Assembly (NCBI GenBank): GCA_002269645.1
Contig: NIVC01000172.1
Location: forward strand, 210,558 to 274,557
DNA from: Macrostomum lignano
Taxonomy: Eukaryota
DNA: 64,000 nucleotides
Direction: 5' to 3'
Below the pieces are notes generated by a model. That model did not search any database. It was not told the DNA's origin and saw only the letters and a list, made by a program, of their open reading frames with translations. Below, piece after piece: positions 9,203 to 35,979 of this stretch (the stretch's first letter is position 1; each line of letters starts with the position of its first letter). Position numbers and translations under genes: made by a program.

Positions 9203-12200
9203 TCAGCGCAGCTGGTTTGCGGCCTCGGCAGCCGCAGTCCTGATGGCGGTCCTCAGCCGGTCGCACAGTTGGACAATTCTGCCTGCCTGAGCCGCCAGCG
9301 GAGCCGCCTGCCGTGACAGCGCCGCATCCGGCCGGAAGTGGAGCGACAAGTCGATGTAGGGGTCGGACTCGGCGGCGCTGTTCGGGTAGAAGTCGCCCTC
9401 GGCTACGATGGCGTCGACGGCAGCGGCGGGATCGGGGTCGGCCAGATGGAACCAGTGGGCGCGACGCCGGTGCCGGATGCCGACGATCCGGTCTCGCATT
9501 GACGGCGGCACCCGCTCGCTGACGCGGATGCGACCGCCGGGCGCCGCCCGGATGTAGGCGAAACCTTCGGTAGCGGCGTCTTTGAAGAGGCTCCGATGCA
9601 GCCCGGAGCCGGCGGCCACCGCGGCAGCGGTTGTCACCGTGATCCTCGTGTCGACGCCTCCACCGAGTCGATCGTCGTCGAAGTCGGTGTCCAAGACGGT
9701 GGCGTGCACCCAGTTGAGCTGGCGCTCTTCGACCCGCTCCAACTGCAGGCTGGAGTCGTGGTTGAGCACAGCCTCGTATGAGGTCGACACCTTGACTGAC
9801 AACTGCGATTGGATGAGAGTGGGATTCTAGTGAGGATTTTCCATTGTCGAGTGGGGATTTTCCATAGAATGAATTGGGGATTTTCCACTAAATGAATCGG
9901 AGATTTCCTACAAAATGAATTGGGGATTTTCCACAAAATGAATTGGGGATTTTCCACTAAATGAATCGGAGATTTCCTACAAAATGAATTGGGGATTTTC
10001 CACTAAATGACTTTGGGATTTTCCACTAAATGACTTTGGGATTTTCCACTAAATGACTTTGGGATTTTGCACTAAATGAATTGGGGATTTTCCACTAAAT
10101 GACTTGGGGATTTTCCACTAAATGAATTGGGGATTTTCCACTAAATGAGTTGGGGATTTCCATTGCAGGAATCGGGGCCTTCCAATTCAAAATCACCTTC
10201 ACGCCATGCCCCTGCCTGTCCGGCAGAGCCGCCGGAGCTTCCGTTCTCACGAATCCCAAACTTGACAAGGCCGCGGCGAAGATGGCGACGTCCAGAACCT
10301 CAGCCGGCTGCTGGCCGCTGCACCGATGTCGACGCAGCCGTTCAGCCATGGAAGTCGCCGACGCCGCCTCCGACTGCAGTGGGTACAGGCCGCAGCGGAA
10401 GCCGCAGCCCAAACGACGGTTTCGCCGAATCGATTTCGCTTCCTGTGCCTTCGGCGCCTCTCTGCGACCGCCGACGCCCCCACCGCCGCCGTTGCCGCGG
10501 CCCCCGACTTGCAGCGGCATCATTGGGATTCCGTCCACTTGATCGCGTTGGCCAGGCGGCGGCGGCGGCGGCTCCCGCGGCTCGAACTCCTGGCGCTCTG
10601 CCTGGCGCCGGTACTTCTGGCCCTTGGCTACGAAGGCGGCGGTCTCGGCCAGGGACAGAGTGCTCTGGGTGGCCGGCAGCGACTCGTCCGCGTTCAGCAG
10701 GTAGAACTGGCCGACGCGAACGGTCACCTCCAGGGAGGCGGGCAGCTCCGACTGGCCGTGGGGCAGGCCCGACAGCTGAGGGAATTTGATGGGATCTGAG
10801 AATGAGGGGATCTGAAGATTATGGGATCTGAAGACGATGGGATCTGCAGCTGATGAGATCTGAAGCTGATGGGATCTGAAGCTGATGGGATCTGAAGCTG
10901 ATGGGATCTGAAGCTGATGGGATCTGAAGCTGATGGGATTTGAAGCTGATGGGATTTGAAGCTGATGGGATTTGAAGCTGATGGGATTTGAAGCTGATGG
11001 GATTTGAAGCTGATGGGATTTGAAGCTGATGGGATCTGAAGCTGATGGGATCTGCAACTGATGGGATCTGCAACTGATGGGATTTGAAGCTGATGGGATT
11101 TGAAGCTGATGGGATATGAAGCTGATGGGATCTGAAGCTAAGGGGATCTGAAGATAATGGGGATATGAAGCTGATAGGATTTGAAGCTGATGGGATCTGC
11201 AGCTGATAGGATCTGCAGCTGATGGGATCTGCAGCTGATGGGATCTGCAGCTGATGGGATCTGCAGCTGAAGGGATCTGAAGCTGAGGGGATCTGAAGAT
11301 AATGGGGATATGAAGCCTATGGGATCTAAAAAACCAGGTTTGGGGATCAAAGCTCCGGAGATTCGCACCTGCCTGCTCATCACGAGGAACAGCCGCCTGG
11401 CAGCGGCCTCCAGCCAGACGTCGCGGTCCGGGCAGTCGCTGCCCAGACAGCGCAGCAGGCTGGCCGTCTTCAGTCGGTGTTCGCCCACCACGCCGGACAC
11501 GCAGTTGACCAGCCGGAAGCGGCAGTGCTCGGACAGGCAGCGGTCGCCAAGCAGCAGGCTGGCTCCGTCCATGAAGTACCTGCAGGCCCGGCGCCGGTGG
11601 CAGGTGCGCAGCAGCCAGCCCGCCGCCCCGGCCATCAGGCGAACCTCCCGACGAAGCCGGGCGACCGCGCCGGCGTCGCCCTCGGCGGTGAGGCGCAGCA
11701 GGGGCGGCCTGTCGGGCAGCGGCAGCAGCTGCACCCTGGCACAGCCGGTGGCCGAGGCCAGCCGAGCTTCGTGAAAGCCGGCGGCACGGCCGAGCTCCTG
11801 GCTGAGGCGGTGCGGCAGCGTCTTGGCGAAGCGGGCGACGCCGGCGCAAATTCCGGCGGAGGCAGCGGCGGTTACCATGGCAACGTCGCGCGAGTAGTGC
11901 AGCCGCAAGAGGGCGGCGCGGGCGCATTTGGCAGCGTACCGGACAGCCTCGGCCGCGATGATCACGGACTGTCCGGACGGGATTGGCCAGCGGTAGGTCA
12001 CGTGACTGTCCAGGCCCGCGCAGGTCCTGAAGAATCGCAGGATTCTGGCGCCTAGCGCGGCGGCGGCGTCGGCATCGGCGGCTGGATCGGCCAGCTGGAG
12101 CTGGTCGGCGATGATGGCCAGCTGGGTGGCCAGCGACTGTCGAGGAGCTTCGTCCTCGTCGGGACGGCACTGCTCTCCGGCCAGCTGTCCGAGTTTACTG

Positions 12201-35979: not shown

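Follow-up and report, generated by a model that had tools for sequence, protein, structure and literature searches.

A Macrostomum lignano gene of the Rrp-type family joins a Dicer/RLR-type helicase, an RNA-directed RNA polymerase and a predicted terminal nucleotidyltransferase in one chain

RNA-directed RNA polymerases (RdRPs) of fission yeast, Tetrahymena and Caenorhabditis elegans cooperate with two further subunits, a helicase and a tailing enzyme, each on a chain of its own, and the need for the tailing nucleotidyltransferase (NTase) is debated. The RNA-directed RNA polymerase complex (RDRC) of Schizosaccharomyces pombe (Rdp1 with the helicase Hrr1 and the NTase Cid12) and that of Tetrahymena (Rdr1 with the uridylyltransferases Rdn1/2) bring the same three activities to one RNA. 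Here we analyze a gene of the flatworm Macrostomum lignano, located in a 64,000-nucleotide stretch of contig NIVC01000172.1 (GenBank assembly GCA_002269645.1, positions 210,558 to 274,557 of the forward strand; hereafter, the window), which encodes a helicase, an RdRP and a domain of the terminal nucleotidyltransferase (TENT) type in a single polypeptide of 2,821 amino acids (aa). A first-pass annotation of the window had compared this gene to the RDRCs, and we judge the comparison apt. The likeness is one of functional analogy: the RDRC subunits of S. pombe and Tetrahymena are separate polypeptides, whereas the flatworm activities are covalently linked, stand in a fixed order, and include a helicase of the Dicer/RIG-I-like receptor (RLR) type. 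In C. elegans, RRF-1/EGO-1, DRH-3, MUT-2/RDE-3, and CDE-1 are likewise encoded by separate genes. DRH-3, a partner of RdRPs, has an RLR-type helicase and a C-terminal domain (CTD) that binds 5'-triphosphate RNA. This CTD ranks among the best structural matches to the flatworm N-terminal domain, but it follows the helicase, whereas the flatworm domain precedes it. Cooperation of TENTs with RdRPs has been described for EGO-1 with CDE-1 and for the pUG tails made by MUT-2, which recruit RdRP (PMC7988573, a review).

In Dictyostelium proteins of the Rrp type, too, a single chain of ~2,400-2,850 aa begins with a Dicer-type helicase and continues with an RdRP. This helicase-RdRP arrangement has been reported from Dictyostelium, from oomycetes of the peronosporomycete group, and from Hydra and Nematostella, in a scheme that stops at the RdRP (Bollmann et al., 2016; PMC4791657). 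In rrpC knockouts of Dictyostelium, full-length transcripts of the DIRS-1 retrotransposon accumulate, and RrpC is needed for the 5' spreading of small interfering RNAs (siRNAs) (PMC3661229). M. lignano has eukaryotic-type RdRPs, unlike planarians and parasitic flatworms (PMC5594548; bioRxiv 10.64898/2026.03.11.711021); four were reported for the species, and no orthologue of RDE-3 was reported for flatworms (Fontenla et al., 2017; PMC5594548).

Gene model and domains of the protein

The gene spans positions 9203..35979 of the window on the minus strand, to which all positions below refer unless otherwise stated, and comprises 19 coding exons and 18 introns. We rebuilt the model independently from minus-strand stop-free segments and an enumeration of in-phase GT/AG pairs. 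Results showed that the exons (exons 1-7: 35979-35609, 35236-34876, 29886-29224, 28421-28134, 27146-26781, 23327-22493, and 22235-21839; exons 8-13: 21163-20800, 19638-19455, 18730-18565, 17869-17581, 16923-16714, and 16264-16127; exons 14-19: 15557-15168, 14779-14361, 13824-13002, 12391-11369, 10775-10197, and 9802-9203) join in phase into 2,821 codons and a stop, without an internal stop. The open reading frame (ORF) runs from an ATG at 35979-35977, where relatives begin at the same MxCxxC, to a TGA ending at 9203. Its length and end coordinates equal those of the first-pass annotation, which had proposed 19 minus-strand exons forming one ORF of ~2,821 aa. All 18 acceptors are AG and 17 of the 18 donors are GT, in a GT(G/A)AG-like context. 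The gene's only other donor, that of intron 15 (14360-14355), reads GCAAGT after an exon-terminal AG; this is the standard GC-AG variant, and it provides the sole junction at that place that preserves the RdRP frame. The exons have a GC content of 58-70% (exon 1, 49%) and a tandem-repeat cover of 0.6%, whereas introns 3-18 (9803-29223) are 47-93% tandem repeat; owing to this contrast in repeats and composition, the exon borders are visible independently of translation.

Over its full length, the product of the rebuilt model shows 100% identity with M. lignano PAA88896.1 ("hypothetical protein BOX15_Mlig000965g3"), for which the UniRef name is "RNA-directed RNA polymerase", and since the homology reaches E = 0 for this database protein and ~1e-290 for relatives, chance is excluded. 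The GenBank annotation of the assembly was derived from genome-guided RNA-seq with StringTie/TACO, had its units split wherever trans-splicing or poly(A) addition was evident, and took its ORFs from TransDecoder (PMC5730564). Because it was built from an RNA-seq transcriptome, the single ORF has short-read transcript support, which is not that of a full-length cDNA. A near-identical copy, also of 2,821 aa (PAA74855.1), occurs at a second M. lignano locus. The M. lignano assembly is partly duplicated. Further support for the fusion comes from exon 16 (13002..13824), which, unspliced, holds both the C-terminal tail of the RdRP (AAWY...SFPW, 13736-13587) and the core of the NTase within one stop-free segment (13904-12963); the RdRP-NTase junction is therefore independent of any splice. 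We conclude that this is a real gene of the M. lignano nuclear genome and that it encodes a fusion in one chain.

The RdRP occupies aa 1124-1893 (exons 8-16; 13587..21075), with matches to PF05183 and to RdRP_head (PF26253), the latter being listed for PAA88896.1 and its relatives. The Pfam RdRP match (2.5e-121; 406.6 bits, cut-off 23.8 bits) covers positions 1-581 of the 582 in the profile over aa 1124-1712, a region that holds the motif NPCLHPGD, starting at aa 1519, and the catalytic DLDGD at aa 1568-1572 (15488-15474). Exons 8-16 are bridged by single alignments to relatives. The nearest match of the domain is Arabidopsis RDR2 (9e-52), and QDE-1 (2e-15) lies farther off. On the evidence of the full profile and the DxDGD loop, the protein is classed with the eukaryotic cellular RdRPs (RDR/QDE-1/EGO-1).

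N-terminal to the RdRP is a DExH helicase of the Dicer/RLR type (aa 124-683, exons 2-5; 26781..35236), in which we located motif I (PTGSGKT, aa 201; 35007-34987), motif II (DECH, aa 303; 29712-29701), motif III (TAS, aa 337; 29610-29602), and motif VI (QSRGRAR, aa 620; 26972-26952). A Pfam scan of the full protein detected DEAD (4e-18) and ResIII (7e-15), both within aa 179-342, and Helicase_C (7e-17, aa 513-629). The best matches among PDB sequences were DCL1 (2.7e-44), an ancestral Dicer helicase (1.6e-37), LGP2 (2e-35), RIG-I (1e-30), and MDA5 (7e-29), and the exon 2-5 junctions are bridged by single alignments to relatives. The Pfam scan of the full protein gave no match at E<=1 for RNase III, PAZ, the Dicer dimerisation domain, or a double-stranded-RNA-binding domain (dsRBD), and none for a signaling domain (CARD, Death, or TIR). 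An identity as Dicer was rejected, in agreement with the first-pass annotation, since RNase III and PAZ are missing from the Pfam scan and the likeness is limited to the helicase. With RLRs and the Dicer helicase the protein shares the type of DExH helicase and a zinc beta-tent, but by Pfam it is without CARDs, RNase III, PAZ, and dsRBD.

A spacer of 417 aa (aa 684-1100; exons 6 and 7 plus the first part of exon 8; 21145..23327) separates the helicase from the RdRP. It is open, has an exon-like composition, and contains a run of eight glycines. No Pfam match was found in it, and a phmmer search matched only the spacer itself, without similarity to family members; all relatives carry a helicase-RdRP spacer of similar length. 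We count the spacer as part of the protein because of its in-phase canonical splicing and its identity with the transcript-based annotation, and it may hide a fast-evolving domain.

The N-terminal domain (N-domain; aa 1-122, exon 1; 35614..35979) is modeled as a four-cysteine zinc beta-tent of the RLR-CTD/Yippee kind. Its cysteines (C3, C8, C61, and C64) form two pairs and are invariant across 20 aligned relatives. An AlphaFold2 model of aa 1-122 had a mean confidence (pLDDT) of 94.7, and in Foldseek its top matches were the CTDs of RIG-I and of C. elegans DRH-3 bound to 5'-triphosphate double-stranded RNA (dsRNA), with TMq 0.52-0.61, probability 0.99-1.0, and E from 7e-3 to 4e-2. Cereblon CULT, MsrB, Yippee, and Mis18 came next, and all of the structural matches are beta-tents. 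In a profile search the flatworm domain gave weak matches to MsrB, Mis18, and Yippee, and the M. lignano sequence itself has no Pfam match to RIG-I_C-RD or Yippee-Mis18. When the family was searched member by member, sub-threshold Pfam matches to Yippee-Mis18 appeared in 14 of 20 and to RIG-I_C-RD in 10 of 20, the best E being 2e-5 for each. The model thus points to a beta-tent zinc domain in the neighborhood of Yippee and the RIG-I CTD. The first-pass annotation had called the N-terminus RLR-CTD-like, which is fair at the level of the fold, where the RIG-I and DRH-3 CTDs rank highest, but membership is not established: by sequence the domain is as near to Yippee/Mis18 as to the RIG-I CTD, and it precedes the helicase, in departure from the RLR order of helicase, pincer, and CTD. 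Since the RIG-I regulatory domain is reported to be undetectable outside animals (Lupas et al.; PMC4287342), a pan-eukaryotic relative is of some evolutionary interest.

The TENT-type NTase, with a palm and a probable central domain, lies behind the RdRP at aa 1955-2270 (exons 16-17; 11846..13403). Its GS (G1972-S1973; 13352-13347), DVD (D1985 and D1987; 13313-13305), D2057 (13097-13095), K2067 (13067-13065), and WAR (starting at W2091) were located in the protein, and among 17 relatives aligned after the RdRP, G1972-S1973, S1984-D1985-x-D1987, D2057, K2067, and W2091 are invariant. The first-pass annotation had also listed intact helicase motifs I-VI, an RdRP DLDGD, and an NTase GS/DxD/D triad, and all of these were recovered in the spliced protein. 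On the full protein, MTPAP-like_central (PF22600) matched aa 1962-2076 at 1e-5. On the isolated region the same profile scored 28.8-30.6 bits (1.5e-6 at 28.8), over the 27-bit cut-off, and 17 of 17 relatives were matched, with a best value of 2.7e-11. A profile of the NTase family searched against the PDB found C. elegans GLD-2 (1.5e-6), CutA (3.7e-6), TbTUT4, MEAT1, Tailor, mtPAP, and Cid1 over both lobes, the alignment reaching residues 70-267 of GLD-2 and 81-272 of CutA. Foldseek with a model of the region returned CutA (4e-6), TUT1, Cid1, MEAT1, and GLD-2, all at probability 1.0, and aligned 350-400 columns to Cid1 and CutA. The pLDDT of this AlphaFold model was 75, with low confidence in long insertions of the central domain. 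With the TENTs Cid1, GLD-2, CutA, and TUT4 the domain shares the Pol-beta-like palm, the GS, DxD, and D residues, and probably the central domain; it differs from known TENTs in its low identity (~15%), in the large central-domain insertions, in that PF03828 is undetected, and in being always tethered behind an RdRP. Its sequence and its model suggest an enzyme of the TENT type with an intact active site, which is apparently active.

A conserved module (C-module; aa 2273-2514, exons 17-18; 10521..11839) follows the NTase and carries the motifs FH..L...TGA.V, RYFMEGS, and RFG.FY. It is present from oomycetes to animals and opens with a beta-alpha-alpha-beta-beta-alpha unit (aa 2273-2350) of KH-like topology, modeled with a pLDDT of ~75-90. 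We do not claim a KH domain here, since the likeness consists of topology and a Foldseek match to KH34 at rank 42, without Pfam support. The C-terminal tail (aa 2515-2821; 9203..10520), encoded by the last part of exon 18 and by exon 19, starts with low complexity, and the model has a low pLDDT where it ends. Within it, residues ~2622-2700 are weakly conserved, and a segment of the tail matches eight relatives at 1e-3 to 2e-8.

Distribution of the family

By sequence, the M. lignano protein is a member of an old and widespread Rrp-type helicase-RdRP family; it is already annotated and is not unique. At least 60 proteins have the same collinear architecture, and its order recurs in five or more supergroups of eukaryotes. 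In segment searches, N-domain, helicase, RdRP, and NTase were collinear in at least 22 first-pass relatives, with the C-module also in its place behind the NTase, and a full-length search gave 43 further proteins with the same Pfam set, mostly of 2,300-3,400 aa (a few of ~1,640-2,220 aa). A hidden Markov model (HMM) detected the NTase module in 36 of 44 relatives. A search of the NTase alignment profile against an index of 5.8 billion proteins returned nothing, probably because low-complexity words swamped the candidates, and an exhaustive HMM search was used instead, in which the profile of NTase and C-module was compared with 1.84 billion cluster representatives. It gave 651 matches, with 87 clusters at E<=1e-30. 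Among 39 new representatives of at least 2,000 aa, 38 have the order helicase-RdRP-NTase and 19 also show the N-domain. In this search the NTase/C-module was never paired with another partner, and the shorter matches look like fragments.

Members were found in animals (Rhopilema, Sanderia, Hydra, Dendronephthya, Oopsacas, Artemia, and Symsagittifera), in Amoebozoa (Heterostelium, Synstelium, Cavostelium, and Endostelium), in oomycetes (Phytophthora and Pythium), and in the chrysophyte Dinobryon, the dinoflagellates Effrenium and Prorocentrum, and the diplonemid Diplonema. A JGI protein labeled "Mesen1" is presumably from the streptophyte alga Mesotaenium, as we take from the label. Several members bear on the integrity of the layout: in Phytophthora nicotianae the homolog occupies a single genomic ORF of 8,061 nt without interruption, the Cavostelium and Endostelium versions are ORFs of de novo transcripts with the same layout, and the P. 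sojae RDR was cloned from cDNA at full length (PMC4791657). Members from Hydra, dictyostelids, a diplonemid, and oomycetes retain the NTase triad, in oomycetes usually with Glu as its third residue, and a Dendronephthya protein (P0026) and one cluster representative (P0130) have lost it. A short clade of 1,639-1,657 aa (metagenome and JGI sequences, one of them named "ERCC4-related helicase") consists of beta-tent, helicase, and RdRP and ends directly after the RdRP, and the HMM did not find the NTase/C-terminal module in it. This clade represents either a secondary loss or a state before the fusion.

The flatworm helicase and NTase/C-module align to proteins of Phytophthora, Pythium, Hydra vulgaris, and Heterostelium album, the named species that this comparison covered. 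In the dictyostelid H. album, EFA81291.1 matches the profile of NTase and C-module at 2045-2571 and keeps GS, SDLD, and D. Dictyostelium Rrp had been named in the first-pass annotation as a precedent for helicase-RdRP fusion; the relationship is real but closer than a precedent, since both belong to one family and the H. album member has the NTase too. Toward relatives outside the flatworms, the M. lignano protein has an identity of ~25-30% and a spacer of its own that cannot be aligned. The RDR1 proteins of Phytophthora sojae, P. infestans, and P. nicotianae have the same collinear helicase-RdRP-NTase module; oomycete members show an N-terminal beta-tent that is weak or undetectable and usually a Glu at the third acidic position. 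The Hydra vulgaris protein of LOC105846402 (2,566 aa) has an NTase module with an intact triad.

The uniqueness that the first-pass annotation implied is therefore not upheld, since the same order occurs in at least five supergroups, the gene was already annotated, and RdRPs of M. lignano had been reported (PMC5594548). That annotation had named an architecture already common and characterized as grounds for refutation; the architecture is indeed widespread, but its NTase and N-domain were found in no description in the available literature. For an RdRP-NTase or an RdRP-RIG-I-CTD fusion, the literature searched gave nothing relevant, which does not exclude a prior description of either domain, and targeted reading of PMC4791657, PMC3661229, PMC6396948, PMC10080066, PMC7988573 (a review of metazoan TENTs), and PMC13650160 gave no mention of such a fusion. 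The family's conserved NTase and its RLR-CTD-like N-domain thus appear to be undescribed in the available literature.

Introns, a retrotransposon and flanking genes

Sixteen of the 18 introns are each packed with a private tandem array, the arrays being mutually different and having periods of 4 to ~230 nt; examples are (TTAG)139, (GAGT)133, and 16-, 20-, 22-, 24-, 35-, and 38-mers. Over the whole window, 35% of the sequence is tandem repeat; the share published for simple and tandem repeats in the genome at large is 15%. The same low-complexity arrays, rich in CT/GA, return in several introns and between genes (24146-25277, 42142-42449, 47113-47745, and 63192-63807) and yield long spurious ORFs of the "ERREKRGE" and "SLLSPL" kinds on both strands. 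The (TGTC)n array of intron 7 (21445-21833) has the same unit as an (ACAG)n array at 58980-59262, in the opposite orientation.

Intron 2 (29887..34875) carries a Ty3/gypsy long terminal repeat (LTR) retrotransposon of ~4.6 kb (~30121-34752) in the orientation of the gene, and the element lies outside the protein. The LTR cores (34575-34752 and 30121-30298) form a 178-nt direct repeat and are 99% identical; the insertion is therefore young. Pfam detected an aspartyl protease with RVT_1, and RT_RNaseH with Integrase_H2C2 and rve, beside a gag-like CCHC segment. These regions (gag-like, 34551-33289; protease-reverse transcriptase, 33866-32277; RNase H-integrase, 32536-30416) lie in three different, overlapping frames, which suggests frameshifting or early decay of the element. 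A transposon thus sits inside a putative transposon-silencing gene.

Elsewhere in the window are a rhodopsin-type G-protein-coupled receptor (GPCR) split over two frames (3849-5242, minus strand), an SLC7-like amino-acid permease (41518-44253, plus strand), an RNase H fragment of a retroelement (37506-38408, plus strand), a fragment of a GNT-I-like glycosyltransferase (53863-54309, minus strand), and an open segment of 309 aa without a Pfam match (636-1562, minus strand). The permease gene also has repeat-filled introns (42142-42449 and 44335-45116). Contamination and horizontal origin were rejected for the RdRP gene, considering that its introns and tandem arrays are typical of the window, that intron 2 holds the LTR element, and that the flanking genes (GPCR and amino-acid permease) are of animal type. 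Scans of the whole window for tRNAs and Rfam families gave no matches.

Possible action on RNA and rival readings

We consider it likely that the M. lignano gene encodes an Rrp-type helicase-RdRP-NTase protein that works as an RDRC built in cis. By analogy with DRH-3 and RIG-I, the beta-tent and helicase would select and engage an RNA, probably through its terminus or a duplex end, and would remodel it or translocate along it. The RdRP would copy the engaged RNA into complementary RNA or dsRNA, and the NTase would add untemplated nucleotides to the 3' end of the template or the product, in the way that MUT-2 with its pUG tails, Cid12, and Rdn1/2 act in trans. Such a tail could mark or prime the template, as in the cases of MUT-2 and Cid12, or it could complete the product. 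From the genetics of RrpA/RrpC in Dictyostelium, the output would feed silencing by Dicer and Argonaute of transposons and possibly of viruses. We infer from these analogies that the protein may be a self-contained factory of dsRNA or siRNA precursors. The first-pass annotation had proposed that the fusion could sense the end of an RNA, tail it, and copy it, which we regard as a hypothesis.

Several observations weigh against this reading, and they are best considered beside its rivals. The transcript support for PAA88896.1 is a short-read assembly, not a full-length cDNA; the link from helicase to RdRP (exons 5-8) is not bridged in this locus by homology alignments, as the 417-aa spacer cannot be aligned; and another M. 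lignano locus has helicase-only models of 601-621 aa (PAA82259.1, 621 aa) that end near motif VI and may stem from truncated copies, from breaks in the assembly, or from short isoforms stopping at the equivalent of intron 5. The ORF might be a chimera of annotation or assembly made from a polycistron, in which spliced-leader trans-splicing or internal polyadenylation would produce one mRNA for the helicase (exons 1-5) and another for RdRP and NTase (exons 8-19). Transcriptional units of M. lignano often hold several trans-spliced genes (PMC5730564), the spacer of exons 6-7 is without homology support, intron 5 is 3.4 kb long, and the helicase-only models of the other copy would fit. However, the frame is open and in phase from exon 1 to exon 19, also through the 1.2 kb of the spacer exons, whose GC content is exon-like and which are free of repeats; the annotation pipeline split units at trans-splice and poly(A) evidence yet retained one gene; the second locus has a model of identical length (2,821 aa); and the order is kept in ~60 relatives, among them the intron-free Phytophthora ORF and the de novo transcripts. 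We therefore regard a chimera as highly improbable. The weak kinship of the N-domain with the RLR CTD also weighs against the preferred reading: the Foldseek values are 7e-3 to 4e-2, the query has no Pfam match, and the domain stands N-terminal to the helicase, where RLRs carry theirs C-terminally.

The NTase could be a non-catalytic scaffold that serves in RNA binding or packing, which would make the protein simply a helicase-RdRP. The full-length NTase score falls just under the Pfam cut-off (26.0 vs 27 bits), PAP_assoc (PF03828) was not detected by Pfam on the full protein, the isolated region, or the relatives, the central domain has long insertions modeled at low confidence, and Dendronephthya P0026 has lost the GS/DxD signature. 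Cellular RdRPs, RDR2 among them, have a terminal transferase activity of their own, so that a separate NTase might seem redundant. Against a scaffold stand the G-S, S-D-x-D, third acidic residue, K, and W-A, which hardly vary, if at all, among oomycetes, dictyostelids, and animals, as would not be expected of one, and a fold and profile that match active TENTs over both lobes; we find this explanation unlikely. The protein might instead be an active enzyme outside siRNA amplification, either an RLR-like antiviral sensor-effector or a source of dsRNA or tailed RNA for decay, chromatin, or the germline. Its helicase and N-domain find their closest counterparts in RLRs and DRH-3, and poly(I:C) induces Nematostella RdRP1-3 together with RLRs (PMC8476169). 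Furthermore, intact RdRPs of Branchiostoma are reported to occur without small RNAs of the RdRP type (Pinzon et al., 2019; PMC6396948), and a role in RNA interference (RNAi) therefore cannot be assumed. Yet Dictyostelium RrpC acts in siRNA spreading and retrotransposon control (PMC3661229), no CARD, Death, or TIR domain appeared in the Pfam scan, and the three partner activities match known RDRC compositions, which leaves such a role outside siRNA amplification somewhat unlikely.

For the preferred reading of an RDRC in cis, the fixed order of three activities and a putative RNA-end sensor, kept from amoebae and oomycetes to animals, is strong evolutionary evidence that the activities meet on one and the same RNA. 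Point mutations in one recombinant protein could show in which order it senses, unwinds, tails, and copies, and for M. lignano, a flatworm tractable to transgenesis, the gene provides a specific candidate for the amplification of RNAi. Since the NTase lies within the RdRP gene, the lack of a stand-alone RDE-3 orthologue in M. lignano would also be explained. In Dictyostelium and Phytophthora, existing knockout and domain schemes ignore two conserved domains. The value of the finding lies in TENT and beta-tent domains that are family-wide and apparently overlooked, rather than in any uniqueness of the M. lignano locus. Tentatively, and with more doubt than confidence, one may suppose that beta-tent, helicase, RdRP, active TENT, and C-module were joined in an early, possibly the last common, eukaryotic ancestor, and that the pairing of helicase and CTD in animal RLRs and DRH proteins shares this origin, despite the report of a RIG-I CTD confined to animals (PMC4287342). 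If so, a single-polypeptide RDRC with TENT and sensor domains would have gone undescribed.

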